Assembly: GCA_002269645.1 (NCBI GenBank)
Contig: NIVC01002822.1
Location: forward strand, 74,043 to 138,042
DNA: 64,000 bases
Origin: Macrostomum lignano
Lineage: Eukaryota
Direction of reading: 5' to 3'
In this document: positions 3,195 to 48,900 of the stretch, one piece after another
Numbering within the stretch: position 1 is the first letter of the stretch
Layout: every line of letters begins with the position of its first letter
Program-made: the position numbers and the translations under genes
The notes under the pieces: generated by a model
What the model was told of the DNA's origin: nothing
Databases searched by the model: none
Seen by the model: the letters and a program-made list of their open reading frames with translations, nothing else

Positions 3195-3596
<402 letters not shown>

Positions 3597-4159
3597 CTGC
3601 GCACTCCGCACCCCAGACTAATAGCTGTTTTGCCGCAACGCTAATCGCCGCAAATTATCCGGAGGAATTTGCCTCTTGGCTCCGCTGACTGACGGCCTGC
3701 TGCTGGTGTGTCTATTTAGCTGCCTGCAGCCTCTGCCAGCCAGCGGGGGTGGCTAAACAAGCATTTTCACTCTGAAGCTGCTGCTGATAGCAGCTGTGAA
3801 CGGAGCGGGGCAGCGCGATCTGCATCTCTGTGTTCGCTGACGCGGCTCCGCAGATTGCTTAACGGCTCCACAGTGCGCCGTCCCTGTCTGCAGTTGAAAG
3901 TGTGATTTCTCGCACAGAGTGTAAGACGGGGAAAGCTGACAGGCACCCAGCCTTGAGACCCCAGGATACCGGACACTGAGGCTCTGTGATGCTAAATAAT
4001 ACAGACAGAAAAAGTGAAAGAGCAGAGGGGCAGCCAGAAATTCCCGGGCGAGGCGTCCCTAATGACATGGGCGTCATCAAAATGAGGTCAGCGACCCCCC
4101 AGTCTCGGCTGGTCCCGGCGGGGGGGGCTGAGTGACAACTCCGGCGCTTATTTTCACAG

Positions 4160-4283
4160 CTTTGCAGCCACCAAGCGTGAGGGGCGGCGATGCGAGAGCG
4201 GGCGGGGCGAGCGGTGGAATCGAAGTTGCGACGGTGGGCATCGCCTCCACCTCAGGCTGACCTCTGTTGACCTGTTGGGACAG
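4160..4283 (+). CDS. Possible upstream exon of the IgSF gene (would need a GC donor)
   Basis: ttattttcacag|[42 protein letters not shown] |gcaaat; phase 0 end fits the 5358 exon; RLHLRLTSV resembles an Ig E strand. Confidence 0.3.
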
Positions 4284-4401
4284 GCAAATTGGGGGGTGTT
4301 TTCTCCATGACAGGCGCAACACCGCTATGAGGCTTTTGGTAGCTGTGGCAGTTCTTACTGATTCTGACTGGGCCTGATCGCATGCAAGTGTGCAAACACT
4401 G

Positions 4402-5226
<825 letters not shown>

Positions 5227-5357
5227 GCAAGTGGGATTGGACGGACTACAACCATTAATAGTTTTAAATTGTTTCATTCATGAAAGTTTTCCAACGATGA
5301 AATTTGCTTTAACTGTCACTCCAGCTGCTAAATGAGACACCCGACAGCCGCCTGCAG

Positions 5358-23197
<17,840 letters not shown>

Positions 23198-26393: not shown

Positions 26394-26570
26394 TCAATAA
26401 ACCCAGTTAACCGGCACCCACTGGTGCTTGGTGTGCACCAGATCCACGCACTGCTTCAGCTGGGCGATGGTGTCCTCGATGTCGTTATTGATGATCTTCA
26501 GGTCAAAGTAGTGCCCGTAGTGCCGCTCCAGCAGCTCGCTCTCCTTGGCCAGCCGCTCCAGGCTGCCGTC
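26394..26570 (-). CDS. CASK: CASK exon 17 (GuK end, stop)
   Basis: ccgcag| [47 protein letters not shown]. Confidence 0.96.
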   Translation of the reverse strand, partial: DGSLERLAKESELLERHYGHYFDLKIINNDIEDTIAQLKQCVDLVHTKHQWVPVNWVY

Positions 26571-29500
26571 CTGCGGCAGTTCGAGGGGGGGGAGATAGAA
26601 AAGGGGGAGCGCTAAGCAACCGTGAGAAGTAGACAGGTGGAAGTTGACAGAGTGAGAGGTAGACAGGTGGAAGTTGACAAAGTGAGAGGTAGACAGGTGG
26701 AAGTTGACAGAGTGAGAAGTAGACAGGTGGAAGTTGACAGAGTGAGAGGTAGACAGGTGGAAGTTGACAAAGTGAGAGGTAGACAGGTGGAAGTTGACAG
26801 AGTGAGAAGTAGACAGGTGGAAGTTGACAGAGTGAGAGGTAGACAGGTGGAAGTTGACAGAGTGAGAGGTAGACAGGTGGAAGTTGACAGAGTGAGAGGT
26901 AGACAGCAGAAGTAGACAAAGGGAGAGGTAGACAGCAGAAGCAGACAAAGGGAGAGATAGACAGCAGAAGTAGGCAATGTGGACGTGAGAAACGCAGAAG
27001 TAGGCAATATGGACATGAGAAACGCAGTAGGCAATATGGACATGAGAAACGCAGAGGCAGCTCACATTGAGTCCGTGCACGTCACTCATGGTGCTGAGCT
27101 CGGGCGCAGCGATGAAGACCACGTAGGGCGCGAACTCGGCGGTGCGCAGGACGCGCAACGCCTGCGGCTCAACGTCAAGGATGGCGACTTTGCCGTGCCG
27201 ATGAATCTCCCGAATGGTGTCCAGCTTGGTGCCGTACATGGCGTCCTCGTGGGTGCCGTACTCCAGGTACTCGTTGTTGGTGATGTCCCGCATCATCTCC
27301 TCGCGGCCCACGAAATAATAACTGCGCCCGTTCACCTCGTTCTTGCCGGGAGGCCGGGTCGTGTCTGCGGTGGGGTGTCAGAGATCTACTACTGATCCGG
27401 GTTGATTACTAGTAGTATGTAAAGTATACGTCAATGAGCTACGGCTGACACTTGAAAAAGTTCAGAGAGGTTCTGATCTGAGTGACCCCTTTGGTTGCTC
27501 AGGACGGGTTACAATGGTTTCTCAGGACGGGTTCCAATGGTCACTCAGGACGGGTTCCAATGGTCACTCAGGAAGGGTTCCAATGGTCACTCAGGACGGG
27601 TTCCAATGGTCACTCAGGAAGGGTTCCAATGGTTTCTCAGGACGGGTTCCAATGGTCACTCAGGACGGGTTCCAATGGTCACTCAGGACGGGTTCCAATG
27701 GTCACTCAGGACGGGTTCCAATGGTCACTCAGGACGGGTTCCAATGGTCACTCAGGACGGGTTCCAATGGTCACTCAGGAAGGGTTCCAATGGTCACTCA
27801 GGAAGGGTTCCAATGGTCACTCAGGAAGGGTTCCAATGGTCACTCAGGAAGGGTTCCAATGGTCACTCAGGACGGGTTCCAATGGTCACTCAGGACGGGT
27901 TCCAATGGTCACTCAGGACGGGTTCTAATGGTCACTCAGGACGGGTTCTAATGGTCACTCAGGAAGGGTTCCAATGGTCACTCAGGAAGGGTTCCAATGG
28001 TCACTCAGGAAGGGTTCCAATGGTCACTCAGGACGGGTTCCAATGGTCACTCAGGACGGGTTCCAATGGTCACTCAGGACGGGTTCCAATGGTCACTCAG
28101 GACGGGTTCCAATGGTTTCTCAGGACGGGTTCCAATGGTTTCTCAGGACGGGTTCCAATGGTCACTCAGGACGGGTTCCAATGGTCACTCAGGAAGGGTT
28201 CCAATGGTCACTCAGGAAGGGTTCCAATGGTCACTCAGGAAGGGTTCCAATGGTCACTCGGGAAGGGTTCCAATGGTCACTCAGGAAGGGTTCCAATGGT
28301 CACTCGGGAAGGGTTCCAATGGTCACTCGGGAAGGGTTCCAATGGTCACTCGGGAAGGGTTCCAATGGTCACTCGGGAAGGGTTCCAATGGTTGCTTGGA
28401 CGCGAATTCAGCGGTGACATCAAAGGCCCCCAGAGCAGGCAGCCAGGCCAGCCGGACTCACGCGGAATCGGGTAGGCGAAGCGGTCGGGCGCGGACTGGA
28501 TCAGCGTGTTCTTGATGTGACGCCTGCCAACGCCGTGGGCGCCAAGCAGCACCAGCGTCTTCCTGCGGAAGTTGGTGAGCTGCACCACCTCCTCGTACGT
28601 GACCATCTCCAGCTGGTCGTAGGCCGCGGCCGCGAACTGCTGCTGCTTGCCGGCCATGCCGGCGCCGCCGCGCTGTTTAGTGCCAGATTTGGCGCCCTGG
28701 CGCCGACCAAACGAGAAGAGGCCGGCACCGCAGTTCACGGGGTCCTTCTTTGATCGTTCGATCGCGGTGCAGGCGGCGCGCCATTCCTGCAGCTCGGGCG
28801 ACGGAATCATGCTGGCCGGCGTGTTGCTGGGGGCGTTCCAGGCCCGGGCCTGGGGGCGGTGGGTTACGTGGGCCAAGTGTATCAATTGTGTCAAAGGTCA
28901 CATGGGTCAAGTGTGTCAAAGGTGACGTTGGTCAAGTGTGTCAAAGATCACATGGGTCAAGTGGGTCAAAGGTCACGTGGGTCAGGTGTGTCAAAAGTCA
29001 TCTGGGTCAAGTGAGTCAAAAGTCACATGGGTCAAGTGTGTCAAAGGTCACATGGGTCAAGTGGGTCAAGGTCACATGGGTCAAGTGGGTCAAAGGTCAC
29101 ATGGGTCAAGTGAGTCAAAGGTCACATTGGTTAAGTGTGTAAAGGTCACATGGGTCAAGTGTGTCAAAGATCACATGGGTCAAGTGGGTCAAAGGTCACA
29201 CATGGGTCAAGTAGGTCAAAGGTCACATGGGTCAAGTGGGTCAAAGGTCACACATGGGTCAAGTGGGTCAAAGGTCACATGGGTCAAGTGGGTCAAAGGT
29301 CACACATGGGTCAAGTGAGTGTAATAAGTCAAGATTAAATTTAAAAAATGCGCAAACCAGGATGAAGGGCATAACTTAAGGGCAAGGCCGGTCAAGGGCT
29401 TCCAGAAGGTCAATCTTACCTGCCACCAATGATGGTCGTCTTTGCTGATGACTTGCAGGACGTCGCCAACCCGGAAGCGGATACCGGCCTGAGGACACGG

Positions 29501-32500
29501 GTGCAGCTCGTCCTCGTCGGGATTGTAGTTGAACATGGCTTTCACGTAGATCTGGTGGGCGGTAGGTGTGGGCTTGGCTAATATGAACGGATGCACGCTA
29601 ACATTGCTACTGACACTAAGACTGTAAGTAGACAAAACGGTGGTTAGAAATTTATTCAAGATCATTCAGTTCAAATATTATTCAAACCAGAAAGGAGCAC
29701 TGATCACATTTGCAAGCTAACTAGCACTATTAAAGTAACATTAATTTTGCTACTAATTAGTCAACCTATGACATTAAAAAAGGTTTTTAAAAATAACAAC
29801 ATATTGGAAATGAACAGCAGAATTTCATGTTTATGCGCAGATGGGCGACATTTATAATGCATGGATTTAGTAGCACTACAATCATGAAGTGATATGGGAA
29901 ACTGACCCAGCAACTGAGGATCTGGGAGGCTGGCCCAGCAACTGAGGATCTGGGAGGCTGGCCCAGCAACTGAGGATCTGGGAGGCTGGCCCAGCAACTG
30001 AGGATCTGGGAGGCTGGCCCAGCAACTGAGGATCTGGGAGGCTGGCCCAGCAACTGAGGATCTGGGAAGCTGGCCCAGCAACTGAGGATCTGGGAGGCTG
30101 GCCCAGCAACTGAGGATCTGGGAGGCTGGCCCAGCAACTGAGGATCTGGGAGGCTGGCCCAGCAACTGAGGATCTGGGAGGCTGGCCCAGCAACTGAGGA
30201 TCTGGGAGGCTGGCCCAGCAACTGAGGATCTGGGAGGCTGGCCCAGCAACTGAGGATCTGGGAGGCTGGCCCAGAACTGAGGATCTGGGAGGTTGGCCCA
30301 GCAACTGAGGATCTGGGAGGCTGGCCCAGCAACTGAGGATCTGGGAGAGTGCCCAGTCGGTGAACACAGGACTCTGTGCATTCATGCGCAGATGGGCGAG
30401 CCTGATCTCGAACCCTGATTCTTACAGATTCCGGGACAGAAAAATTGCAGAATATACAATCATTGTGAATTATACGATTGGAATTTTAATGGGAAAACTA
30501 GACCAATTCACATGATTTAATGCTGTTTAGTATAAAAGAAAATCGAACTTGGTGCAGGGCTGTAAGATTTAGCAATTCAATCAGAGGTCGCACAACAGAA
30601 GCCAATAAGCGAGCAAAATTTTTATAACCATAAATTTCAACACGCGAAGAAGTTGATAAATGAAAGACTGAATTTTGTGAATTTATGAACGAGTGAAGTG
30701 GTGATTAGGCAAATTAGTGAACCCGTGAATGAATGTATCCATGAATGACTGAACCCATGAATGAGTGAAGCCGTGAATGAATGTATTAGTGAATGAGTGA
30801 ACCCATAAATGAATGAACTCGTGAATGAGTGAACTCGTGAATGAATGCATCCGTGAATGAATCAGTGAATAAGGTGAATGAGTGAAGCCATAAATGAGTG
30901 AACTCGTGAATGAATGCATCCGTGAATGAGTGAAATCGTGAATGAATGCATCCGTGAATGAGTGAACCCGTGAATGAACGTATTTATGAATGAATGCATC
31001 GTGAATGAGTGAAATCGTGAATGAATGCATCCGTGAATGAGTGAACCCGTGAATGAATGTATCCGTGAATGAATGTATTAGTGAATGAATGCATCCGTGA
31101 ATGAGTGAATTCGTGAATGAGTGAATTCGTGAATGAATGCATCCGTGAATGAGTGAAGCCATGAATGAGTGAACTCGTGAGTGAATGCATCCGTGAATGA
31201 GTGAACGAGGTGAATGAGTGAAGCCATGAATGAGTGAACTCGTGAGTGAATGCACCCGTGAATGTGATGGAATCCGTGATTGTTGGTATACCTCGCACTG
31301 CATTGGGTGATTTCGGTAGCTGGGTACAATTTTCAAAGTGACGCTGCCCCGAGCCTCTTTCTGAAATGTGTTTAGAAAATTAAAGTAATAAGCCTGTGAG
31401 TCACGACTCGATTGCATCTAAGAACTGAGCAGGGTCGCCTGCTGTTGCGGGAGCACTCCGATTAGCCAATAGGAAAACTGATTTCTTAGAAAAAGCGCAG
31501 TGTGGGAGAATAAACTAGAAAATATAGGCAATACTTGGAAATTATTAAAACAGCACTGCCTTCCGACCGATTTCACTGAGCTTGATCGCATGTACATAAT
31601 TTATGCACATTCCACACGATAATGCGCATGCTATATGTGTACAATGAAAATAATTTGTATACTGTCTATGATAATGCATACTTATATGTACATTGCTCAT
31701 GATAGTGTGTACAGGATATGCACATTGCTCATGATTATGTGTACAATGCATGCACATTGATCATGATCATGTGTACAGTACATGCAAATCGCTCATGATA
31801 ATGTATACAGTACATGCAAATCGCTCATGATAATGTGTACAGTGAATGTACATTGCTCATGATAATGTGTACAGTGTATGTACATTTCTCATGATTGTGT
31901 ACAGGACATGTACATTGCTCATGACAATGTGTACAGGACATGTAAATTGCTCATGATTATGTGTACAGTGAATGTACATTGCTCATGATAATGTGTACAG
32001 GACATGCACATTGCTCATGATTATGTGTACAATGCGTGCACATTGCTCATGATTATGTGTACGGGACATGCAAATCGCTCATGACAATATGTACAAAATT
32101 CATATCAGCAGTCGAAGATAAACAAACCATAATCAGAGCAAGTGAATTAAAAATGCTTTACAAAATGGAACAATGCACCAAAAGCCAAACACACTTATAA
32201 TTATTATCAATAAGGTGAGATATAAATTAACTAAATGATAAACTCTAACCAAGGCCCAATGTTAAGAGCAGTGGGGATAGAGTGCACTCAGAACCGTGAC
32301 TAGGATAAATAAGATAATGATTATATATTAGTGAGTGGCATAAACATCCTGTGAGACTTTAATAACCAAATCATATCAGGAGTCACTGGTTATTAAAGTG
32401 AATAAAATGTAGAAATTTATTGAAACAGCTATTGAATACATTCTCATTGCTGCAGTGCTGAATGCAAAAGCCATTCCATCGGACTGCGGAGTCCCATTGC

Positions 32501-35500
32501 ACAGCTTCAGCATCTGCTGTAGCAATTGTAAGCCAACTACATCACCAGCAGCTGGACAAAGCTGCTGCTTGCACTCACAGCTGCATCATCCATTGGTTAC
32601 TCACCTTGTACTGTCCACCTGCTTTGATTTCCCCTCTCTGTCTACTGTCTCCCTCACCTGTCTTACTGTCTTCCTTATCTGTCTTACTGTCTTCCTTATC
32701 TATCTTACTGTCTTCTTATCTGTCTTACTGTCTCCCTCACCTGTCTACTCTCTCCTTCACCTGTCTACTCTTCCCCTTATCCTGTCTACTCTCTCCCTAC
32801 CCTGTCTACTACTCCCTTCATCACCTGTCTACCTCTCATCCCACCTGTCTACCTCACCTGTTTACCCCACCTGTCTACTCTCACCCTACATGTCTACTCT
32901 CATCCCACCTGTCTATCTCTCTACCTCACCTGTCTACCTCTCTCACTCATGTCTACCTCTCTACCTCACCTGTCTACCTCTCTCACTCATGTCTACCTCT
33001 CTACCTCACCTGTCTACCTCTCTAACTCATGTTTACCTCTCTACCTCACCTGTCTACCTCTCTAACTCATGTTTACCTCTCTACCTCATCTGTCTACCTC
33101 TCTACCTCACTTGTCTACCTCTAACTCACCTGTATGCCTCTCTACCTCACCTGTGTACTTCTAACTCACCTGTCTACGCTTATCTCACCTATCTGCTTTC
33201 ATCCCACTTGTCTACTCTCATCGCACTTATCTACTCTAATCTCATCTGTCTACTCCCCCCACACAGACCTCACACACAGTAGCACATCAACCCGCACAAA
33301 GAAATCACCAAGTTTACCTCCTTGAACGATTGGCACACTGTCTTAGGCGCGCAAAGGCTTGGCACAATTTTTATCGTCACCATGCCGCGTAGAGATTTCT
33401 GCGAATTTAATAAACGCGATAGATAATAGCCTGTAGGTCAATGCTCCGGACACGCTACTGACAGTAGACAAAACAGCATATGTCAGAGACGTACTGCAGA
33501 AAATGAATATTTTCATTATTATAAACCGAGGCAAATGACTGAATCGGAGTGCTCTAATGAAGCTAATCTGACACAACTAATACAAAATAACACAAGCATT
33601 TAGGGGCCAAAGCTCACCAGCAGTCGCTGCAGAGCCTCAACGGACTGGCCAAGCACAGGCTCGCCATTGATTTCTCGAATCTCGTCGCCAACATGAAGCG
33701 TGCCTTGAAAATATTTTATAATAAAAACATAGAAATCGCGAACATCTTAGATACACTACTTAAAAGTAATGCTCGTTTCTTTAAATTGTTGTAAGAATTG
33801 AAAAACTTAAATTTTATTGCCTAAATGCTGTTGCCTGGATAGTAACTAATTTGGATTGGAATTACGAAAATCGGGGATCCGTGAATATGGGACTCAGTGA
33901 AGATTAGGGATCCGTGAATATGGGAGTCCGTGAAGATTTGGGATCCTTGAAAAGGAAAGTCCGTGAAGATAGGGTCCGTGAAGATTAAGAATCCGTGAAA
34001 ATTGAGGATCCGTGAAGATGGGATAAGTGAAGATGGGGATCCGAGTAGATTGAGGATCCGTGAAGATGCGAGTCCGAGAAGAAGATTGAAGATCCGTGAA
34101 GATGGGGATCCGTGAAGATTGAGGATCCGTGAAGATAGGGATCCGTGAAGATGGGGATCCGAGTAGATTGAGGATCCGTGAAGATGGGAGCCCAAGAAGA
34201 AGATTGAGGATTTGTGAAGATGGGGATCCGAGTAGATTGAGGATTTGTGAAGATGGGGATCCGAGTATATTGAGGATCCGTGAAGATGCGAGTCCGAGAA
34301 GAAGATTGAAGATCCGTGAAGATGGGGATCCGTGAAGATTGAGGATCCGTGAAGATGGGGATCCGAGTAGATTGAGGATCCGTGAAGATAGGGATCCGTG
34401 AAGATGGGGATCCGAGTAGATTGAGGATCCGTGAAGATAGGGATCCGTGAAGATGGGGATCCGAGAAGATTGAGGATCCGTGAAGATAGGGATCCGTGAA
34501 GATGGGGATCCGGGAAGATTGAGGATCCGTGAAGATGGGGATCCGTGAAGATGGGGATCCGTGAAGTTGGGGATCCGAGTAGATTGAGGATCCGTGAAGA
34601 TAGGGATCCGTGAAGATGGGGATCCGTGAAGTTTGGGATCCGTGAAGATGGGGATCCGTGAAGATAGTGATCCATGAAGATGGGGATCCATAAAGATGGG
34701 GACCCGTAAATTCGGATTTCAAAATCAAACGGCAATTTCCAGGAATTGAAACCCCCCTGCACTGCACAATCTAATCCTGTGAACGGCAGTCTTACCCTGC
34801 CTGTGAATCATGCCGCCGTGCATAATCCTGGCCACGATAATCTTGTTCTCCTCCGACATTTTCAGCGTGATGCCCTGCGCAGTGGAGCGGGGTGAACTGG
34901 TAAATGCGGTGCAGCAATCATGGCTAATGCGCTTTGCTTGTAGAAAACGCAAAAAGAAACGCAAAGTAAAGTGAAGGAGTGGTGGCTTAAGTTACAGTAT
35001 GCGCACAGGTAAAGAGACGTGCGAGTACAAGAGCTGTTTAGCATGTTGGGATTTGTGATTATCAATACACTACGAATGATCAGAACCTTTGAAAGTTAAG
35101 CAGAGCTGACAGCGGTTAGTAAACTCAGAATATTCTTATCAAAGTGCACCTGTTATCTATCTCAGCAGTTTGACAACTTGCTGAGCGGGAGTTGCACAGG
35201 TATACTCAGTCACTGAGTCACTCACTCAGTCACTCACTCATTCACTCACTCAGTCACTCATTCACTCACTCAGTCACTCACTCAGTCACTCATTCACTCA
35301 CTCACTCATTCACTCAGTCACTCACTCAGTCTCTCACTCACTCACACAATCCCCACTAGCTTAATTGTCCCTCTGCACAGCCATAAAAGTAAAACCGAAA
35401 ACCCACCATTGGCTCATTGGTGTTCTTCTGAAACTGCACCAGTCTGACTCGGGTGACATTGTCGGGTTCGGCGTCCAGGCCGCCTTCGTCGGCAACGTCA

Positions 35501-36452
35501 CCGTTCAGATAGGAGGACAGCGGCGGCGGGGTCACCCGGATGGCTTGGTCGCTGTACACGTCGTGGGCGAGCACGTCGTGGGCTTGAAGGAGCGCCTGCA
35601 GAGATAAGGGTAGGATTTAGTGGGAAATATAGGATTGGCTCTAGAGTTTTCTTTGAACATCATTTATTTAGCAGTCAGTATGTGGCGCCGATGAGAAACC
35701 AGTGTGGCGCCGATGGGGAAACCAGTGTGGCGCCGATGGGGAAACCAGTGTGGCGCCGATGGGGAAACCAGTGTGGTGCCGATAGGGAAGCCAGTGTGGC
35801 GCCGATGGGGAAGCCAGTGTGGCGCCTATAAGGAAACCAGTGTGGCGCCAAAAAGACAGCCAGTGTGGCGCCAAAAAGACAGCCAGTGTGGCGCCAACAG
35901 GGAAGCCAGTGTGGCGCCAACAGGGAAGTCAGTGTGGCGCTAATAAGGAAGCCAGTGTGAAGGCCAGAGCAATACTAATGTGAAAAAGCAATCACTGGCC
36001 GATACGAGGCTCTCCAGTGCATCGCCATTGCACACGGCTGCACCCGCTGATAACGATCGGGCACTGCTGCAGAGCAAGGCTTGCCAAAGCCACAAATTCT
36101 CAAAGTCAGTCAGCCAAAAATGTTCGGTCAAAATGCTAGTTAACTGACCTCAAGGCACTGCACTATTGTTAAAAAAATAATTTTATTCACTGTTGGCTCT
36201 CAACAATTCTGCACTACTTGCATTGGAGAACTTGTGGAAGCCTTCTGGGCTGGTGTTAATGGCTGGGAATATATGGTGGGAAAACAAACAAATAATGGAC
36301 TGACAGACGGACAGATAGACAGACAGACACTAAGACAGACAGACAGACAGACAGACAGACAGGCAGACAGACAGACAGATAGACACACAGACAGACAAAC
36401 AGACAGGCAGACACAGACAGACAGACAGACAGGCAGACAGACAGACAGACAC

Positions 36453-36483
<31 letters not shown>

Positions 36484-39400
36484 CACACAGACAGACAGAC
36501 AGGCAGACAGACAGGCAGACAGACAGACAGACAGACAGACAGGCAGATAGACAGACAGACAGACACAGGCAGGCGCTCACCCAGATGACGAGGTCATCCT
36601 TACTCAGCCCGCACTGCGTAAGCGCGGGGCGGCACCGCTCGCACTGGCAGAGCAGCTGGCCAGCTGCCTCGGGCTGCATCAAAATCCCCTGGCCGCTACT
36701 CAGGAGCAGCTCCGAATTCCGATTGATCGATCGCTGCTAAGCAAGGCCTATTCTGACAGCCAACAACTGAGCTTTCGGGTTTTTCCTACCTCAGGACCTG
36801 GCGCTGGGCAGCTCGGAATTTATGCGCGAGGAGGCGATTAGGAAGGGAGGGGGCGGGCCGGGACCCCCGATTCGCAGCAGAAGCGAATCGCGCAGAACAA
36901 GCGCAGCGCACGGCTGGGGAGTGGCCGGTGGGTCGAAGCGAAAAATCCCACGCGAAGCATACTTTTATTAATCCAATCTCTGCTGGATTAGCAACAGCAC
37001 ACAACTGCTGACAGGCAGCTGCGGCTCTCCCCGTTTCATCGGAATTTTCCTCTCTGCCTGCCAGCCAGTCAGTCAGTCAGTCAGTCAGTCAGTCAGTCAG
37101 TCAGTCAGTCAGTCAGTCAGTCAGTCAGCCAGTCAGTCAGTCAGTCAGTCAGTCAGTCAGTCAGTCAGTCAGTCAGTCAGTCAGTCAGTCAGTCAGTCAG
37201 TCAGTCAGTCAGTCAGTCAGTCAGTCAGTCAGTCAGTCAGTCAGTCAGTCAGTCAGTCAGTCAGTCAGTCAGTCAGTCAGTCAGTCAGTCAGTCAGTCAG
37301 TCAGTCAGTCAGTCAGTCAGTCAGTCACCCACTCACTCAAGTCAGTCAGTCAGTCAGTCAAATTCTACTCTCCCAATCGATCGAGCAGCCCAGACTCTGC
37401 AGGGCATTCATTTGGCAGAGGCGGTGTTGGGGAAAAGCCGGACACAGCACAGTCTGTCTGCATGCTGGCACGGAGAGACTCCCGCATTCAGAAAGATTAA
37501 TGCCCACAGGGGGAGAGACATGAAATTGTCAGTCTGCAGGCGCCGTGCCGGACCAGCCACTTGCGGGCTGCACACTCTTGCAGTTGTAAATTCTGCATAA
37601 AAAAGTGACAATAAAAGTTCCCAGGCACAGAAGTGGCTGGTGAAAAAACGCTAAAATGTTTTTGCAATTCGCGGATTCAAACTGCCTTTCTGCGGCCTGG
37701 AGCCATTTTGGCTGATGAAGGCGCACCAGTGTGAGAGAATGGGTGCCTGGGCATGCTGTGAGAGAATGGGTGCCTGGGCATGCTGTGAGAGAATGGGTGC
37801 CTGGGCATGCTGGAAGGAGGGGTATTTTAGGGCCACGGAAGCTGCATGGCGCCAAGAAGAGACATATTTTGGCGCAAAAGAGGCTGCGTAACGCCTAGAA
37901 GGGGTATTTTAGTACCAAGAACGAGTATTTTGGCGCCTAGAAGGGGTATTTTGGCGCCAAGCAAGAAGAGGTATTTTTATGCCAAGAAGGGGTATTTTGG
38001 CGCCAAGAGGCTGTCTAGCGCCAAGAAGGGGTATTTTGGCGCCAAGAAAGAAGGGGTATTTTGGCGCCAAGCAAGAAGGGGTATTTTTATGCCAAGAAGG
38101 GGTATTTTGGCGCTAAGAGGCTGTCTAGCGCCAAGAAGGGGTATTTTGGCGCCAAGAAAGAAGGGGTATTTTGGCGCCAAGAAAGAAGGGGTATTTTGGC
38201 GCCAAGAAAGAAGGGCTATTTTGGCGCCAAGAAAGAAGGGATATTTTGGCGCCAAGAAAGAAGGGATATTTTGGCGCCAAGAAAGGGATATTTTGGCGCT
38301 AAGAAAGGCTATTTTGGCGCCACGCAGACAGCGCGACACTGATAACTGACAATTCGATTCAGTGCGGCCTCAATTCTCCCTCATCGCCCGCACCCCGGCA
38401 GCTGCTCACCCTGAAGTGCGGCTGCAGCAGCAGCTCCCGCAGCTCCATGCAGTCGCTGTAGAACTCCCTGGAGCGGCACTGGCCGATGCTGTCGAGAACG
38501 TCCCGGCCGAGGCTGACCGCTTTGTCCGGGATCTGTCCGCGAATGGCCGAGCCGCTCAGATTGCGACTGTTGATGTGATCGTACAGCTGGGGAAGTGGCC
38601 GGGACGGGTTGAGGATCAGCTTTCGTAGTACACGATGCACTTTGTATTTACATTAAAACAGTTAGTCAATTAGATTAAAAAAACAATTTAATACTACAGT
38701 TCACTGAGGGAATTGAGAATGTGGCACTGGGAGAATTCAGAGTGTGGCCCTGAGGAAATTCAGAGTGTGGCACTGGGAGAATTCAGAGTGTGGCACTGAG
38801 GGAGTTCAGAGTGTGACACTAAGGGAATTCAGAGTGTGGCACGGAGGGAATTCAGAGTGCAGCACTGGGGAAATTCAGAGTGGCACTGGGAGAGTTCAGA
38901 GTGTGGCACTGGGGGGAATTCAGAGTGTGACACTAAGGGAATTCAGAGTGTGGCACGGAGGGAATTCAGAGTGCAGCACTGGGGAAATTCAGAGTGTAGC
39001 ACTGGGGGGATTCAGAATGTGGCATTGGGGGGATTCAGTGTGGCACTGGGGGAATTCAGAGTGTAGCACTGGGGGGATTCAGAATGTGGCATTGGGGGGA
39101 TTCAGTGTGGCACTGGGGGAATTCAGAGTGTGGCACTGGGGGAATTCAGAGTGTGGCACTGGGGGAATTCAGAGTGCGGCACGGGGAGAATTCAGAGTGC
39201 GGCACGGGGAGAATTCAGTGTGTGGCACTGGGGGAATTCAGAGTGCGGCACGGGGAGAATTCAGAGTGTGGCACTAAAGTATTCAATAGATTGCCTACAG
39301 TAGCCAGCAGCCTCCTACAGTGCAACAGATCTCATTCCCCTATCTGCACGAGATGCAAAGCAGCAGAAGGAGTCACTCGGACTCGAAGATGGGACAGACG

Positions 39401-42400
39401 ATAACAAAGTTAGCAGGCGCCAGTCCACTACAAAACAATACACGCATGAGTATTCTGCACACTCGCAGATCAGCCGCCAAACCCCCCGGGGATTCGGGGA
39501 AACTCGGGATATCCCCAAATTCAAATTCTGCACCTACAGAGAGAGGCCAGCCCATGGCCGGAAGGCAGGCGGAAAATTCAAATTTAGCTGTTTATTTACT
39601 GTATTTATCATATCAGATAGATCTGTATAAATAATACTACTTATGACTGAAAAAGAGTAGAGATGTTGAAACATTTATGGAAAAAGTTAATAAAAAGAAA
39701 AAAAAGAAAATGAATGCTGCTAAACTTGGACTTCAGACTCACCTCGAGCAGCGAATGCAGGGTGTCATTTTCGAACACCGACTGCAGCAGGTCTCGATCG
39801 CCTTCGTTGCACTCGGTGAGACACTGCATATCCTCCAGGCTGTCCAGCACTGCTGACACGGCTGCAGAGTTTGCATGGGGTGGCATTTTCGAAGGCTATG
39901 GAGACGATAGGAGCAATATAAAACTGCCTTTCTGGGAGGCTGGCCCAGCAACTGGGGATCTGGGAGGCTGGCCCAGCAACTGAGGATCTGGGAGGCTGGC
40001 CCAGCAACTGAGGATCTGGGAGGCTGGCCCAGCAACTGGGGATCTGGGAGGCTGGCCCAGCCACTGAAAATCTGGGAGGCTGGCCCAGCAACTAGGAATC
40101 TGGGAGGCTGGCCCAGCAAATGAGGATCTGGGAGGCTGGCCCAGAAACTGAGGATCTGGGAGGCTAGCCCAGCAACTGAGAATCTGGGAGGCTGGCCCAG
40201 AAACTGAGGATCTGGGAGAGTCCCAACATGAGGAACTAAAAATGTCTGTACGCAAATGATATATATAGTACTAATACAGCAGGCCTCTGATCAAGCGAAG
40301 ACTGTACGCAGCGCTCACTATGGCCCAGACAAATCGGCAATCAGCAAAAGGTGCTGACAGATGCAGGGCCAACTCTCGGCTGCACATAACTGAGTTCAAT
40401 CTCTCACAAGTGTAACATAGTCTGTAGCTGCGGGTGGGGGCTACGACTGCCGGAAATTGTGAGTCACTTGATATATTATATTTTCATTACTCTACTATAT
40501 TACTTACTACTTACTAAATTTAAATTACTGATATTAAGCAACACAAGGATCTGAGAGTCTGTCTACGAGCATGGGGATCTGGGAGAGTCTGTGTTCCAGC
40601 ATGGGGATCTGGGAGAGTCTGTGTTCCAGCATGGGGATCTGGGAAAGTCTGTGTCCCAGCATGAGGATCTGGGAGAGTCTGTGTTCCAGCATGAGGATCT
40701 GGGAGAGTCTGTGTCCCAGCATGAGGATCTGGGAGAGTCTGTGTCCCAGCATGAGGATCTGGGAGAGTCTGTGTCCCAGCATGAGGATCTGGGAGAGTCT
40801 GTGTCCCAGCATGGGGATCTGGGAGAGTCTGTGTCCCAGCATGAGGATCTGGGAGAGTCTGTGTCCCAACATGATGATCTGGGAGAGTCTGTGTCAACAC
40901 AGGGATCTGGGAGAGTCTGTGTCCCAGCATGAGGATCTGGGAGAGTCTGTGTCCCAGCATGGGGATCTGGGAGAGTCTGTGTCCCAGCATGAGGATCTGG
41001 GAGAGTCTGTGTCCCAGCATGGGGATCTGGGAGAGTCTGTGTTCCAGCATGGGGATCTGGGAGAGTCTGTGTTCCAGCATGGGGATCTGGGAGAGTCTGT
41101 GTTCCAGCATGGGGATCTGGGAGAGTCTGTGTTCCAGCATGGGGATCTGGGAGAGTCTGTGTTCCAGCATGGGGATCTGGGAGAGTCTGTGTCCCAGCAT
41201 GGGGATCTGGAAGTCTTTCTCCCAACATGGGGATCTAAGAAAGTCTGTACGCAACGCTCACTATGGCCCAGACAAATCGGCAATCAGCAAAAGATGCTGA
41301 CAGATGCAGGGCCAACTCTCGGCTGCACATAACTGAGTTCAATCTCTCACAAGTGTAACATAGTCTGTAGCTGGAAAAGTTTCAGTGCTAAGACTGCCGG
41401 AAGTTGTGAGAACTCTGCTTTAACCAAGCTTCTGCATCTGTAAGCTGTCATAAGATTTCGAGCCTACAATTCAATAACCAACCAACCTCAAGCCTGGTCT
41501 CTGAGTGTGGATCTAAGAACAATTTTAACACTTGGAAAAATTAACTTTTAGAGCTGAGGAAAGGAAAAATCTGACAGTGCAAATGTCAATGCAGCAACGG
41601 CTTCTCAGAAGCTGGGAGAATTCTGCAAACTGAGCCGAATTGGCAAGGCAATCCATCAAAACAGTAAATAATTAACAAGTTTCAACTGGCACAGTTTATC
41701 CCAATCATGCTGACGATGCTAACAGAATCTGCCTCTCTGCTCTTTCAGGCCTGGAGAATCTGCCTCTCCGCTATTTCAGGCCTTGAGAATCTGCCTCTCC
41801 GCTATTTCAGGCCTTGAGAATCTGCCTCTCCGCTCCATCAGGCCTTGAGAATCTGCCTCTCCGCTCCTTCAGGCCTTGAGAATCTGCCTCTCCACTTTTT
41901 CAGTCCTTTAGAATCTGCCTCTCCGCCTCTCCGCAATTTCAGGCCTTGAGAATCTGCCTCTCCGCTCTTTCAGGCCTTGAGAATCTGCCTCTCCGCTCTT
42001 TCAGGCCTTGAGAATCTGCCTCTCCGCTATTTCAGGCCTTGAGAATCTGCCTCTCCGCTCCATCAGGCCTTGAGAATCTGCCTCTCCGCTCCTTCAGGCC
42101 TTGAGAATCTGCCTCTCCACTTTTTCAGTCCTTTAGAATCTGCCTCTCCACTTTTTCAGGCCTTGAGAATCTGCCTCTCCGCTCTTTCAGTCCTTGAGAA
42201 TCTGCCTCTCTGCTCTTTCAGTACTTGAGAATCTGCCTCTCCGCTCTTTCAGTCCTTGAGAATCTGCCTCTCCGCTCTTTCAGTCCTTGATAATCTGCCT
42301 CTCCGCTATTTCAGGCCTTGAGAATCTGCCTCTCCGCCGCCTCAGTCCTTGAGAATCTGCCTCTCCGCCGCCTCAGTCCTTGAGAATCTGCCTCTCCGCC

Positions 42401-45400
42401 GCCTCAGTCCTTGAGAATCTGCCTCTCCGCTCTTTCAGGCCTTGAGAATCTGCCTCTCCGCTCTTTCAGTCCTTGATAATCTGCCTCTCCGCTATTTCAG
42501 GCCTTGAGAATCTGCCTCTCCGCTCTTTCAGGCCTTGAGAATCTGCCTCTCCGCTCTTTCAGGCCTTGAGAATCTGCCTCTCCACTCTTTCAGGCCTTGA
42601 GAATCTGCCTCTCCGCTATTTCAGGCCTTGAGAATCTGCCTCTCCGCTATTTCAGTCTTTGAGAATCTGCCTCTCCGCCGCCTCAGTCCTTGAGAATCTG
42701 CCTCTCCGCCGCCTCAGTCCTTGAGAATCTGCCTCTCCGCCGCCTCAGTCCTTGAGAATCTGCCTCTCCGCCGCCTCAGTCCTTGAGAATCTGCCTCTCC
42801 GCTCTTTCAGGCCTTGAGAATCTGCCTCTCCGCTCTTTCAGTCCTTGATAATCTGCCTCTCCGCTATTTCAGGCCTTGAGAATCTGCCTCTCCGCTCTTT
42901 CAGGCCTTGAGAATCTGCCTCTCCACTCTTTCAGGCCTTGAGAATCTGCCTCTCCGCTATTTCAGGCCTTGAGAATCTGCCTCTCCGCTATTTCAGTCTT
43001 TGAGAATCTGCCTCTCCGCCGCCTCAGTCCTTGAGAATCTGCCTCTCCGCCGCCTCAGTCCTTGAGAATCTGTCTTCACTCTTAATCTATCAGTTTCTGC
43101 ACGCAGAAGAACACACAAAGGTTAAATATCTACCTGACACAGACGAAGCCAAAGAGCCGCGCAATATCATGATTCTTTAGCATTGAAAAGTTGCTAGAAA
43201 GAAATTGCTTTTAGCAGCAAGAAGAGAAATGCTGAGGACTGCATCGACTAACAGATGGAGAGCAGAGAAACGTCAGGAAATGCAGTAGTAAGCCTTCTAG
43301 AGGGACGGGCAAGTGGGTTGCTGGCGGAGGCTGGAAAGCCGATAGGACAGCGGAAGGGGGGATCGCCCCGAGGCAGGCAGAGATTGGGAAATCTCGGCGG
43401 CTGCGGTGGGGAAATTAACGAGATGGGAGGGGAGAAGGGCGAGTCAGATGGAGAACAGGAGCTTCAGACAGGGCTGGGAACAGGAAGAACCGGACTGGAG
43501 AGGCAGCCTGGTCGATGATATCAAGACTTTTAGCATCACTGGTGTGAGCCATGCGACTGCCAGCGTGTAAGGCGCTATGAGTCCGTCACACAGGTAACAG
43601 GGACACGAACTACTGGGGAGAGGCGGAGGGAGACGGGGAGGTCAGACATTCTCCGTGTGGGACGATTCTCACAGTGGATTTGGGGCGATTCTCACAGTGG
43701 ATTTGAGACGATTCTCACAGTGGATTTGAGACGATTCTCACAGTGGATTTGGGACGATTCTCACAGTGGATTTGGGACGATTCTCACAGTGGATTTGGGA
43801 CGATTCTCACAGTGGATTTGGGACGATTCTCACAGTGGATTTGGGACGATTCTCACAGTGGATTTGGGGGCGATTCTCACAGTGGATTTGGGACGATTCT
43901 CACAGTGGATTTGGGGCGATTCTCACAGTGGATTTGGGGCGATTCTCACAGTGAATTTGGGACGATTCTCACAGTGAATTTGAGACGATTCTCACAGTGG
44001 ATTTGAGACGATACTCACAGTGGATTTGGGGCGATTCCCACACTGGATTTGAAACGATTCTCACAGCGGATTTCAGGCGGTTCTCACAGTGGATTTGAGA
44101 AGATTCTCACAGTGGATTTGAGACGATTCTCACAGTGGATTTGGGACGATTCTCACAGTGGATTTGGGACGATTCCCACAGTGGATTTGGGGCAATTTTT
44201 ACAGAGGATTTTAGGCGATTCTCACAGTGGATTTGAAACGATTCTCATAGTGGATTTGAGACGATTCTCACAGTGGATTTGAGACGATTCTCACAGTGGA
44301 TTTGGAGCGATTCTCACTGTGAATTTGAGACGATTCTCACAGTGGATTTGAAACGATTCTCATAGTGGATTTGAGACGATTCTCACAGTGGATTTGAGAC
44401 GATTCTCACAGTGGATTTGGAGCGATTCTCACTGTGAATTTGAGACGATTCTCACAGTGGATTTGGAACGATTCTCACTGTGAATTTGAGACGATTCTGA
44501 CAGTGGATTTGAGACGATTCTCACAGTGGATTTGAGACGATTCTCACAGTTGTTTTGAAACGATTCTCACATTGGATTTGGAGCGATTTTTACAGAGGAT
44601 TTTAGGCGATTCTCACAGTGAATTTGGGACGATTCTCACAGTGGATTTGAGACGATTCTCACAGTTGTTTTGAGACGATTCTCACAGTGGATTTGGAACG
44701 ATTCTCACTGTGAATTTGAGACGATTCTGACAGTGGATTTGAGACGATTCTCACAGTGGATTTGAGACGATTCTCACAGTTGTTTTGAAACGATTCTCAC
44801 ATTGGATTTGGAGCGATTTTTACAGAGGATTTTAGGCGATTCTCACAGTGAATTTGGGACGATTCTCACAGTGGATTTGAGACGATTCTCACAGTGGATT
44901 TGGAGCGATTTTTAGAGGATTTCAGGCGATTCTCACAGTGGATTTGAGACGATTCTCACAGTGGATTTGGGGGCGATTCTCACAGTGGATTTGAAACGAT
45001 TCTCACAGTGGATTTGAGACGATTCTCACAGTCGATTTAGGGGCGATTCTCAGTGGATTTGGAGGCTATTCTCCAAATCCAATTAGTGGATTTGGGATAA
45101 ACTAATAACATAGCAGTACCAACCTGCCGAGGTGACGTCATCCTCAGCGGGATCGGCGGCCGAGGCCGCGGTGTCCGCATCGGCGTAGCTGGCGGACCAC
45201 TTGGCGCTGGACACGGCTGCCAGGACGGCGCCCTTCAGCTTCCGCCTCGAATTGAACTTCTTCATCTCTTCCACCGTCTCGCTCAGGTGCAGCTTCGGCA
45301 CCCGGCTGCGCTCGTGGATCCACGGGTGCCGCAGCGCCTCCTCCACCGTCAAGCGTCGCTGCGGATCGACATCCAGTAGCCGGCTCACCAGGTCCTTCGC

Positions 45401-45632
45401 CTCTGCCGAGATGTGGTCCCAGACTCGAGGCTTCTTCTGCCAGAGTTCGATTGGCGGGGTGGCGCTGCTGCCTTAATTAGTGCTCACAATGGGCTCCATC
45501 CGGTCATGCAGTGAGTCCTTGTCTAATTCACGGTAATTGTCCGATAGTGTACTACTACTACTACTACCACTACTACTACTACCACTACTACTACCACTAC
45601 TACTACTACCACTACTACTACTACCACTACTA

Positions 45633-45699
<67 letters not shown>

Positions 45700-45845
45700 C
45701 ACTACTACTACTACCACTACTACTACCACTACTACTACTACTAGCACTACTACTACTACCACTACTACTACTACCACTACTACTACTACTAGCACTACTA
45801 CTACCACTACTACTACTACCACTACTACTACTACTACCACTACTA

Positions 45846-45921
<76 letters not shown>

Positions 45922-48900
45922 CACTAATACTACTACTACCACTACTACTACTACTACCACTACTTACTACTACTACTACTGCTGATTGGGGCTGAAGGCT
46001 AATCAAATTCTTGCTACCACGAGCCACTATAAGCAGAGGACAGCCACTCACCCGATACCGGCCGCTGAGAATCTGCCTGAACAGCACATCCTTGGTGCCG
46101 TAGAAGGGCAGCGAGCCGGTCAACAGGATGTACAGCAGGACTCCGCAGCCCCAGGCGTCCACCGGCTTGCCGTAGGCCTCCCGCCGAATGACTTCGGGCG
46201 CCATGAAGTGCGGCGTGCCGATGCGGCCTTTGAATCGCGAGCGGAACGGATGGCACGGTGCGGTGAAATGCTTCTATTATAAATTTCTACTGTATATAAA
46301 TAGTTATCTATAAACTATTAATGCGGTTAAATCCTACAGACACGAGAGCTGTTTTTGAAGCGAATCCAGGCACTATTAACCAGCTCAAGTCTAGTTCAAA
46401 TCGGTCAAGTTTAGGATTTTTTAAATTTGACTAGCGAGCGGCGCCTTTTAAATTATAACAAAACTGAGCCATGCAAAATAAATTTAAAACAAAAAAACTG
46501 AAGCTCACACAAGCAGTTAAAATTCTGGTCTACTGTAATATTATCTCTGTGTATCACTACTCACTATTAAAAGCAGTCAGTAGTGTGGCAACGCAGCGTT
46601 TAAAGGAAATTGAAGATTAACACCGGATTAAATAACCAAAGAACAAATTGGGGGGTCAAATAAGATTATAAGCCAACGCTTCCAATGCGCTTATTAGATA
46701 ATCCGCCATAGCCAGCCGGTTATTGCTGTTAGGCTAAGTATAATAATTAACCGAGAATAAAATTATGAAAACATGAAATGAGAAATCAGAATTAAGAACA
46801 AAAGCTGTAAGGCATAGCAGCAGCACACGGCAAAGCTCAAGTCCTCAAACCCATTGTCCACATCAGTTATCACACACACACACAGCACCGTGTTGTTTAG
46901 TTAAAATGTTGTGCAGCTTCTTACCCAGCTGGTCATCTCTCAGGCTCACAAAGATTTCCTGCTCTACTTTAACTGGAGTGTCTGCAATAAGCGCGCGGTG
47001 CGGGCAGAGGGGAGAGGCAGGTTGGCAAGCACAATTATCAGGTCTTATTGAATTCTTCTTCAAAATTTTCAAAGTATCTTCTATCATCTAGATTCTGTGA
47101 AGGAAAGACAAGAGTTGGAGAATTGGGAAGCAGGTGAGATAAGAGATTAAGAATCTGGGAGACACGTGAGATGAGAGACTAAGAACCGGGAGGCAAGTAA
47201 GATTAAAGACTGAGAATCGGGGAGACAGGTTGGATGAGAGACTGAGAATCGGAAAGACAGGTGAGATGAGAGACTGAGAATCGGGGAGACAGGTGAGATG
47301 AGAGACTGACAATCGAAGAGACAGGTGAGATGAGACACTGAGAATCGGGGAGACAGGTGAGATGAGACACTGAGAATCGGGGAGACATGTGAGATAAGAC
47401 ACTGAGAATCGGGAGGCAGGTAAAACGAAACCCGAGTGCAGAATGTGCGGCAGTAACACAACTCAGCATAACTCAGCGTACTGCCAGTGCTGACGGTCCA
47501 GCTAGATACTGTAAAAATTTAAAGTACAAGCAGCAAAAGCAATAAAATAGCGGAAGTGTTGCAGAAAAAATGTTGCATAGTAAATGAAAAAAATTCACTT
47601 CTACAATTGACAAAACTATTTCGATTCACACAAAAGCAGAACAAACATCAAGAGTACTAAGTTGAAGCCAAATTAAAGCAGTTTCTTAGAATCTACGAGT
47701 GCATGACTGGGCGGTGTGAGGCCTCATCCGGACAGACTTCACAATTATCAACTATTTCGAATATTTTACGTTTTTTGAAACTCTTACGACCAAAACTACA
47801 GCTCATGGGATAGGGATCACAGATCATGGGATAGTGGGATAGGGTTCACAGATCATGGAATAGGGACCACAGATCATGGGATAGGGATCACAGATCATGG
47901 AATAGGGGTCAAAGATCATGGGATAGGGATCACAGATCATGGGATAGGGATCACAGATCATGGGATAGGGATCACAGATCATGGAATACGGATCACAGAT
48001 CATGGAATACGGATCACAGATCATGGGATAGGGGTCAAAGATCATGGGATAGGGATCACAGCTCATGGGATAGGGATCACAGATCATGGGATAGGGACCA
48101 CAGATCATGGGATAGGGATCACAGATCATGGAATAGGGGTCAAAGATCATGGGATAGGGATCACAGATCATGGGATAGGGATCACAGATCATGGGATAGG
48201 GATCACAGATCATGGGATAGGGATCACAAATCATGGGATAGGGATCACAGATCATGGGATAGGGATCACAGATCATGGAATACGGATCACAGATCATGGG
48301 ATAGAGATCACAGATCATGGGATAGGGATCACAGATCATGGGATAGGGGTCAAAGATCATGGGATAGTGGGATAGGGATCACAGATCATGGGATAGGGAT
48401 CACAGATCATGGAATACGGATCACAGATCATGGGATAGGGATCACAGATCATGGGATAGGGATCACAAATCATGGGATAGGGATCACAGATCATGGGATA
48501 GGGATCACAGATCATGGAATACGGATCACAGATCATGGGATAGAGATCACAGATCATGGGATAGGGATCACAGATCATGGGATAGGGGTCAAAGATCATG
48601 GGATAGTGGGATAGGGATCACAGATCATGGGATAGGGATCACAGATCATGGAATACGGATCACAGATCATGGGATAGGGATCACAGATCATGGGATAGGG
48701 ATCACAGATCATGGGATAGGGATCACAGATCATGGGATAGAGATCACAGATCATGGGATAGGGATCACAGATCATGGGATAGGGATCACAGATCATGGGA
48801 TAGTGGGATAGGGATCACAGATCATGGGATAGGGATCACAGATCATGGAATACGGATCACAGATCATGGGATAGGGATCACAGATCATGGGATAGGGATC

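Follow-up and report, generated by a model that had tools for sequence, protein, structure and literature searches.

Tandem-duplicated, mutually exclusive exons are known from exons 5a/5b of SNAP25 and of the SCN alpha genes, from exons 7a/7b of ATE1, and from the exon clusters of insect Dscam and Mhc; PMC9013439 and PMC9741552 review this class. CASK connects neurexins and other adhesion molecules with the presynaptic machinery. In human CASK, exons 19 (69 bp) and 20 (36 bp) encode the linker that joins PDZ to SH3 and are never both skipped together (PMC8208546), and neurexin binding at high affinity needs the assembled PDZ-SH3-GK supramodule of the protein (PMC12666738). Here we describe a CASK gene of Macrostomum lignano in which the exon that closes the PDZ domain occurs as two tandem copies, an upstream copy 13a and the canonical copy 13b. 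It lies in a stretch of 64,000 nucleotides (nt) of contig NIVC01002822.1 (assembly GCA_002269645.1, positions 74,043 to 138,042 of the forward strand), the whole of which is called the window below. Exon 13a is probably a functional alternative coding exon of M. lignano CASK, a tandem duplicate of the PDZ-closing exon, which would change the PDZ-SH3 linker and the coupling of the domains when it replaces 13b.

How does this locus compare with the systems mentioned above? Like the pairs of SNAP25, SCN, ATE1, Dscam and Mhc, 13a and 13b are adjacent homologous exons of equal phase and similar length, each predicted to complete one structural element and both under apparent purifying selection. 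Unlike that class, double inclusion and skipping both stay in frame, the two copies are separated by an intron of 1957 nt, no docking/selector structure was detected around them, and one of the CASK paralogues includes both copies. Vertebrate exons 19/20 resemble 13a in being regulated alternative exons that change the PDZ-SH3 linker of the same protein (PMC8208546), but they are non-homologous inserts placed after the canonical exon rather than replacements of it, and helix B and strand F of the PDZ domain stay untouched.

The gene is complete and occupies positions 26394..59019 on the minus strand, as delimited by tblastn, by resolution of GT-AG junctions, and by identity to the annotated product of the window, P0121. 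With human CASK as the tblastn query, residues 2-926 were matched in order from about 58956 to 26397. The gene has the CASK domain set (CaMK, two L27, PDZ, SH3 and GuK) on 17 constitutive exons, to which 13a and a kinase microexon are to be added. The translation of the 17 exons with 13b equals P0121 (GenBank PAA55015.1, BOX15_Mlig028881g1, model Mlig028881.g1) at every residue; the annotation of this gene thus uses 13b and does not contain 13a. Pfam finds Pkinase, L27, PDZ and Guanylate_kin in P0121, and the PDZ and SH3 domains were rescored with Pfam separately. The best match of the window PDZ among solved structures is the CASK PDZ (6NH9/1KWA, E = 1e-39), with MPP5 and MPP1 ranking below, and the top database matches are all named CASK. 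By these matches, and by the CaMK-L27-L27-PDZ-SH3-GuK order in one protein, the gene is CASK, as had been proposed in an earlier, sequence-only reading of the window, and not another MPP-family MAGUK. The exons that matter here are the following, a slash marking the exon-intron junction:

33618..33703, minus strand: exon 12, encoding strands D-E and the greater part of helix B of the PDZ domain; ends in ..ALQRLL, donor CTG/gtgagc with G at position +5 (+5G)
33318..33398, minus strand: exon 13a, 81 nt, phase 0-0, unannotated; acceptor ..aaattcgcAG, weak donor GAG/gtaaac lacking +5G
31292..31360, minus strand: exon 13b, 69 nt, phase 0-0, canonical and annotated; acceptor ..cacatttcAG, weak donor GAG/gtatac lacking +5G
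29420..29551, minus strand: exon 14, start of SH3 (IYVKAMF..), with the common acceptor for 13a or 13b

The two copies encode 27 (13a) and 23 (13b) amino acids. That they are phase 0-0 exons with canonical splice sites, identical at 10 of the 14 N-terminal residues, had been noticed in the sequence-only reading and was re-derived from the window; synonymous differences are seen in 5 of the 10 shared codons. When the window was scanned in six frames, the only 14-mer besides the 13b start itself to reach at least 8/14 identity with that start was that of 13a (10/14), all others remaining at or below 7/14, and randomisation of the window under a Markov-1 model, repeated 200 times, gave a best match of 8/14 in nine cases and of 6-7/14 in the remainder. 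The homology between 13a and 13b is also picked up across paralogues by blastn. Judged by these comparisons, the likeness is real and beyond chance, so that the earlier claim of a tandem duplicate stands. The same reading had matched the 69-nt copy with vertebrate CASK in exon size and in the motif KIVPSY, and indeed canonical exon 13 encodes 23 amino acids in 16/16 sequences from human to flatworms, with KIVPSYR in 14/16 and the YR..CE tail kept in most of them; the junction of 13b with exon 14 also agrees with that of orthologues (..CE followed by IYV or IFV). The reading frame is kept in all four possible isoforms, with 13a, with 13b, with both, or with neither.

Since M. lignano has several CASK genes, with protein identity of about 77% or lower, exon 13a can be compared among paralogues. 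The window gene is called A here, B and D are the paralogous loci L002 and L001, and the loci L005 and L006 are recent homeologues of A. Between exon 12 and 13b, a phase 0-0 exon bounded by AG and GT is found in all three paralogues, with a length of 81 nt in A, 87 nt in B and 102 nt in D, and its frame and splice sites are intact at the three loci; a check of B and D for loss, stops and frameshifts found 13a retained. Segments like 13a stand directly before 13b in the following protein models, which come from three of the paralogous genes:

P0125: 29 amino acids
P0123 (a fourth paralogue): RHLQGMVTIKIAPNLSRMIGSHRASLFKE
P0129 and P0245 (paralogue D): MDLRGRVTLRLVSHPAGRPGGPRTAAGSQSAAKE

Between A and B, the proportion of differing synonymous sites (pS, Nei-Gojobori) is 0.67-0.76 in exons 12, 13b and 14, which is near saturation. 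By the same method, codons 1-13 of 13a differ by five synonymous changes (S = 10.2) and by no nonsynonymous one (N = 28.8), where 14-20 nonsynonymous changes would be expected under neutrality, and the chance that five random changes are all synonymous is about 0.26^5 = 0.001; 13b shows 11 synonymous and 0 nonsynonymous differences. Recent gene conversion of 13a between A and B is argued against by these synonymous differences. In blastn of the exon 12-14 interval of A against that of B, only four islands remain: the exons 12, 13b and 14, and 13a, where the match takes in 8 nt of the acceptor as well. The tail of 13a evolves fast in sequence and in length between the paralogues, yet the frame and the terminal AAG GAG/gt are always kept. 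On these counts, both 13a and 13b are under purifying selection; the sequence-only reading had suggested this from a comparison within the gene, and the paralogue evidence, with no nonsynonymous change, a conserved island and intact sites, is much stronger. The donors point to regulation of the pair. Outside the pair, the window gene has 15 internal donors, and every one of them carries G at +5; the donors of 13a and 13b do not, and they lack it in A, B and D alike (6/6). Conserved weak donors of this kind are characteristic of exons under regulation, and they mark both copies, 13b no less than 13a, as alternative.

The protein consequences of the pair were followed through the Pfam PDZ profile, which has 81 positions:

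13b isoform: 70.4 bits, profile positions 2-80
13a isoform: 65.5 bits, profile positions 2-80
exon 13 skipped: 57.4 bits, profile positions 2-68
13a and 13b in tandem: 64.5 bits, profile positions 2-80, with 13a as the closing strand

By this profile, either copy alone completes the PDZ domain, and the PDZ closed by 13a aligns end to end (4-87) with the solved human CASK PDZ 6NH9/1KWA (E = 3e-37). Alignment to the PDZ-SH3-GK structure of PALS1 (4WSI) places strand F at VTLKIVPS in 13b and at VTIKIVPS in 13a, and leaves a PDZ-SH3 linker of 9 amino acids in 13b (YRNHPMQCE) and 13 in 13a, compared with 12 in PALS1. The earlier reading had assigned to this segment the terminal part of helix B, the final strand of the PDZ domain and the linker to SH3, and the alignments to 6NH9/1KWA and 4WSI bear this out.

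What would such an exon do? Exon 13a would be derived from a duplicate of the exon for the last turn of helix B, strand beta-F and the PDZ-SH3 linker. Used in place of 13b, it would preserve the PDZ fold, with VTIKIVPS for VTLKIVPS, and at the same time it would change the helix-B cap from EA to SL, remove the conserved Tyr-Arg...Cys-Glu linker of 13b, and lengthen the linker from 9 to 13 residues of unrelated sequence. Most likely, PDZ would then be coupled differently to SH3-GuK within the supramodule, and C-terminal ligands, for example neurexin-type tails, would hence be bound with a changed affinity or selectivity, an effect that would be analogous to that of the vertebrate cassette exons 19/20 on the same linker. 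Because these exons vary the linker of the human protein (PMC8208546) and neurexin binding needs the supramodule (PMC12666738), tuning of coupling and affinity seems to be the likeliest role of 13a. The choice between 13a and 13b is probably made by trans-acting splicing factors, as the donors of both exons are weak and lack +5G, and not by nonsense-mediated decay (NMD), by steric exclusion or by the docking of conserved structures in the RNA.

Exons of the same kind were looked for in other phyla, and found there, with a profile of 13a-type sequences; it is to be noted that the RefSeq isoforms are automated predictions. A protein query of 144 amino acids (PDZ, 13a and SH3) had brought up canonical fragments only, of at most 252 amino acids and at most 70% identity, but it seems to have reached only targets about as long as itself and so says nothing on 13a in full-length CASK. 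In such isoforms of at least eight lophotrochozoan species, which represent a chiton, gastropods, bivalves, a brachiopod (Lingula) and a nemertean (Tubulanus), a 13a-type exon is spliced straight to the SH3 exon:

Liolophura sinensis X3: 13a-type exon RSLQGTVTLKVVPSSMGEKAESTNSKE
Haliotis rufescens X6: 13a-type exon RNLRGSVTFKVVPSVGGAQKVESGIE
Patella vulgata X4: 13a-type exon KNLRGQVTFKVSPSVAGAFKLDSNPAHKE
Gigantopelta aegis X2: 13a-type exon RNLHGSVMFKVLPTAEGNYKNDNIMHPE
Argopecten irradians X2: 13a-type exon KELSGSVTFKVIPQPLLSMFGGHGDNNSHNQ
Mytilus edulis X25: 13a-type exon KTLKGHVTFKVQPHATSGLFAQQHMNNNHKK
Lingula anatina X3: 13a-type exon RNLHGDVVMTVVASNDRCFYESIADNSPLIAE
Tubulanus polymorphus: 13a-type exon KKMHGAITFKVIPNFDVSAHDFNANLHQQ

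Argopecten irradians has an isoform with the 13a type only (X2) and another with 13b only (X8), and in Octopus bimaculoides X3 a 13a-type segment is followed by a shortened 13b. When 13 sequences of the 13a type were compared with 16 of the 13b type, the latter always had 23 amino acids, with Ala3 (13/16), Arg4, Ile11, Tyr15-Arg16 (14/16) and, in most, a Cys-Glu end, and the former had Leu or Met at position 3 (13/13), no Tyr-Arg, and a length of 26-34 amino acids. Like the Macrostomum exon, the lophotrochozoan 13a type has the helix-B exon on one side and the SH3 exon on the other, is joined to I[YF]V[RK]A, and shows [KR]-x-[LM]-x-G-x-V-x-x-K-V/I-x-P and, after this pattern, a tail that varies and is without Tyr-Arg..Cys-Glu, 26-34 amino acids in all. 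Unlike the lophotrochozoan type, the Macrostomum copy keeps Ile11 and is absent from annotated products of the A gene. By position and pattern, orthology of Macrostomum 13a to these exons is likely. The PDZ ends of the MPP family are nearer to the 13a type than to 13b, as seen in MPP1 (2EV8, ..KETKGMISLKVIPN) and in PALS1 (4WSI, ..SDMHGTLTFVLIPS, with the 12-residue linker), and the 13a type may sample an MPP-like version of the PDZ-closing element.

A number of observations weigh against the reading of 13a as a functional replacement for 13b, some concerning its use and constraint, others its origin or its relation to 13b. In P0121, the only annotated product of the window gene, and likewise in each of the five members of the corresponding 90% cluster, 13b is used alone. 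The M. lignano annotation is a genome-guided one from RNA-seq, made by StringTie and TACO with --isoform-frac 0.75 and later filtering (PMC5730564), settings by which minor isoforms are dropped by design. The 13a of paralogue D is relaxed (pN, the proportion of differing nonsynonymous sites, about 0.34) and rich in Gly and Pro. In the homeologues L005 and L006, 13a differs from that of the window by 1 synonymous base of 81 (1.2%), against a divergence of 1.7-4.6% in the parts of the introns free of repeats and of 8-12% in those made of minisatellites. A strong contrast of exon and intron had been expected; the one seen is consistent with constraint, although it is weak and alone not significant. 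AlphaFold2 models of PDZ-SH3-GuK had a mean predicted local distance difference test score (pLDDT) of 43.5 for the window protein with 13b and of 50.9 for the Haliotis protein with the 13a-type exon, values too poor for a comparison of isoforms; as a low-confidence hint, GSVTFKVV of the latter was modelled as a strand, with its tail below a pLDDT of 50.

As to origin, it is possible, though we consider it doubtful, that the Macrostomum lineage acquired 13a independently, in a duplication of its own that preceded the split of the paralogues, and that this copy became convergent with the type of molluscs, brachiopods and nemerteans, the position being a recurrent hot spot of duplication. Branchiostoma shows that this exon can be duplicated separately: its CASK has an exon-13 duplication of its own, with isoform X44 and isoforms X27/X28 as alternatives and X4 containing both copies (P0134, P0253, P0254, P0256). 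There, the same exon is tandemly duplicated as in Macrostomum, and isoforms use one copy or the other, but both Branchiostoma copies are of the canonical type (23 amino acids, Ala3, Tyr-Arg), and by these residues the event is most likely an independent and younger one. Macrostomum 13a also has Ile11 as 13b does, while all 13a-type sequences from outside the flatworms have Val11, and it is on average more similar to foreign 13b (8.8/14) than to foreign 13a (7.1/14). This last difference is, however, expected anyway, since 13b is nearly frozen beside a fast-evolving 13a. In Capitella there is no 13a, the intron between exon 12 and 13b being only 60 nt long, and in Schistosoma japonicum none is recognisable in an intron of 2.3 kb; the exon is absent or lost in these two lineages. 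Against convergence stand the KSL(R/Q)G start common to Macrostomum A/B, Octopus and Liolophura, for which parallel multi-nucleotide changes of E to S and of A to L would be needed, the shared loss of Tyr-Arg together with a long variable tail, and the order of the exons, with copy a upstream of copy b in both Macrostomum and the Octopus model. These characters are few, and for exon order outside Macrostomum the one source is the Octopus protein model. When 13a and 13b were clustered across phyla by overall similarity, a single origin could not be told from a multiple one. Judging by the start KSL(R/Q)G, by the features of the tail and by the order of the exons, we put a single origin of the 13a type at about two in three, and the pair is probably ancient in Lophotrochozoa.

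A bolder form of this history, which we offer as a tentative and rather unlikely one, is that the pair is a single ancient, mutually exclusive switch of CASK, dating from the lophotrochozoan stem or earlier (more than 500 Myr), which exchanges the final PDZ strand and the linker, toggles the supramodule in this way between two ligand-binding states, was lost repeatedly, and was re-created in vertebrates by exons 19/20. If this is true, the switch would have been lost in Capitella, probably in parasitic flatworms, and perhaps in vertebrates and arthropods. Other tandem repeats were seen in CASK models of other phyla. In those of nemerteans and of a chiton, another exon, of the GuK domain, forms a tandem pair as well (P0138, P0248 and P0128 versus P0130), which is alternative in Lineus, while the models of Tubulanus and of Liolophura contain both copies; the window has one copy (27161-27066). 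Branchiostoma isoform X4 also has the segment NVTRVRL[VI]QFQKNT[ED]EPM repeated.

Is exon 13a used instead of 13b, or together with it? The sequence-only reading had called the pair probably mutually exclusive, and this part of its claim is not established: strict exclusivity in the window gene is unproven. The only RNA-supported Macrostomum models with 13a, P0129 and P0245 of paralogue D, contain 13a and 13b together; they place 13a of D at exactly the predicted boundaries, in an annotation built by StringTie/TACO under the guidance of RNA-seq. In P0246, from paralogue D as well, 13b stands alone, and the three models together make a cassette pattern. Isoforms that use one copy exclusively are annotated in RefSeq for Argopecten (X2/X8) and seven other species, in other phyla only. 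No mechanism that would enforce exclusivity was found when frame and NMD, steric hindrance, spliceosome type and RNA pairing were checked. Since every combination of 13a (81 nt) and 13b (69 nt) is in frame, NMD cannot enforce it; the 1957 nt between the exons exclude steric hindrance; and, as to the type of spliceosome, all their sites are GT-AG. Neither conserved nor recurrent intron pairing was found around 13a and 13b in A, B and D, by a test of low power. The only inverted repeat that could be considered for docking and selector sites was a 15-nt pair of 87% (33465-33479 / 30520-30534), and when stretches close to the exons of A, B and D were scanned for duplexes, z stayed within about ±2, apart from one low-complexity outlier in B which did not recur; both results were rejected as evidence.

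One has to consider that 13a might be a cassette included with 13b, giving two beta-F-like segments of which one closes the PDZ domain and the other forms a loop or a linker extension of 23-27 amino acids. Inclusion of both is in frame, it is what P0129 and P0245 contain beside the 13b-only P0246, and Octopus X3 and Branchiostoma X4 also have both copies; Pfam accepts the tandem product with 13a closing the domain, and vertebrate linkers reach a similar length when exons 19 and 20 are included. Yet we regard this arrangement as unlikely for the window gene. The strand half of 13a is constrained in A/B like a true beta-F, without any nonsynonymous change, which a mere loop would not need, and such tight constraint on the strand seems to fit a true replacement strand better than a cassette loop. 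Moreover, tandem inclusion is RNA-supported only for the relaxed, Gly/Pro-rich copy of D, and in isoforms of eight other species the 13a type is joined directly to the SH3 exon.

That 13a is a non-functional relic or a chance open frame, never spliced in the window gene, is very improbable, for although it is missing from the annotated product and all its cluster members and an open frame of 27 codons is by itself not rare, its 10/14 identity exceeds that in all 200 random windows, it has no nonsynonymous change against near-saturated synonymous divergence between paralogues, it forms a conserved island among otherwise unalignable introns with splice sites and frame kept at three loci, and it completes the PDZ profile.

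With exon 13a taken as a functional alternative to 13b, how new is it? A full-text search of the published literature on alternative or duplicated exons of CASK found no paper that describes the 13a/13b pair, and the CASK splicing papers found deal with vertebrate exons 11, 19, 20 and 23L only. To this extent the earlier statement that no report was known holds, but its novelty was overstated, because 13a-type isoforms already exist as RefSeq predictions in at least eight species. Exon 13a is an unannotated exon of a kind already known, the tandem-duplicated alternative exon, and is not specific to the Macrostomum genome.

Three further features of the window gene are listed here:

32637..33255, minus strand: minisatellite in the intron between 13a and 13b, unit of about 20 nt, CAGGTGAGGTAGAGAGGTAGA on the gene strand, starting about 60 nt past the 13a donor
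46981-46925, minus strand: kinase-domain microexon, 57 nt, between exons 5 and 6; acceptor ttgcAG, donor GTAAG
27081 / 27066, minus strand: alternative donors of exon 16, two GT in frame and 15 nt apart

The unit CAGGTGAGGTAGAGAGGTAGA resembles a 5' splice site, so that about 25 such motifs stand in tandem; the array is not conserved in the paralogues. Further minisatellites lie in the introns around 13a and 13b (32095-31686, 31279-30718 and 30347-29891). The kinase microexon is present in the homeologue model P0241 and skipped in P0121, and a homologous insert is found in CASK of parasitic flatworms (P0127, P0135, P0136, P0139) and in some isoforms of molluscs and nemerteans. The choice of exon 16 donor leads to ..MSD/DGSLE or ..MSDVHGLN/DGSLE; the annotated product uses 27066, and the short form is found in P0247, a model of paralogue B. 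A tetraspanin gene precedes the CASK locus of that paralogue (L002 1-1554), and P0247, an ab initio model, fuses tetraspanin-like sequence to CASK, probably as a prediction artefact. Outside the gene, no further gene was recognised in positions 1-26000 of the window, 3' of CASK, where the long open reading frames are all artefacts of long tandem-repeat arrays with a strong strand composition skew (for example, 3159-5277, 7642-9176, 14826-15724, 16137-17892 and 19324-20569). On the 5' side of CASK, fragments of a PIF1-like helicase of the Helitron type lie on the plus strand at 62173-62682 and 63109-63417 (Pfam PIF1, E = 7e-8; Pif1_2B_dom, E = 1.5e-13), with an STPR repeat match as well.

For the biology of CASK, to exchange the final strand of PDZ and the linker by the choice of an exon would be a plausible natural way of tuning the coupling of PDZ to SH3-GuK. 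Such a choice seems to be made in several invertebrate phyla, and vertebrates vary the same linker with different exons. The two copies would also offer a natural pair of PDZ-SH3-GuK variants for structural comparison. An annotation filtered by the transcriptome misses conserved alternative exons of this kind, and comparison among paralogues can recover them. For Macrostomum, which is used as a transgenic model of regeneration, the analysis identifies a missing isoform in four CASK paralogues.

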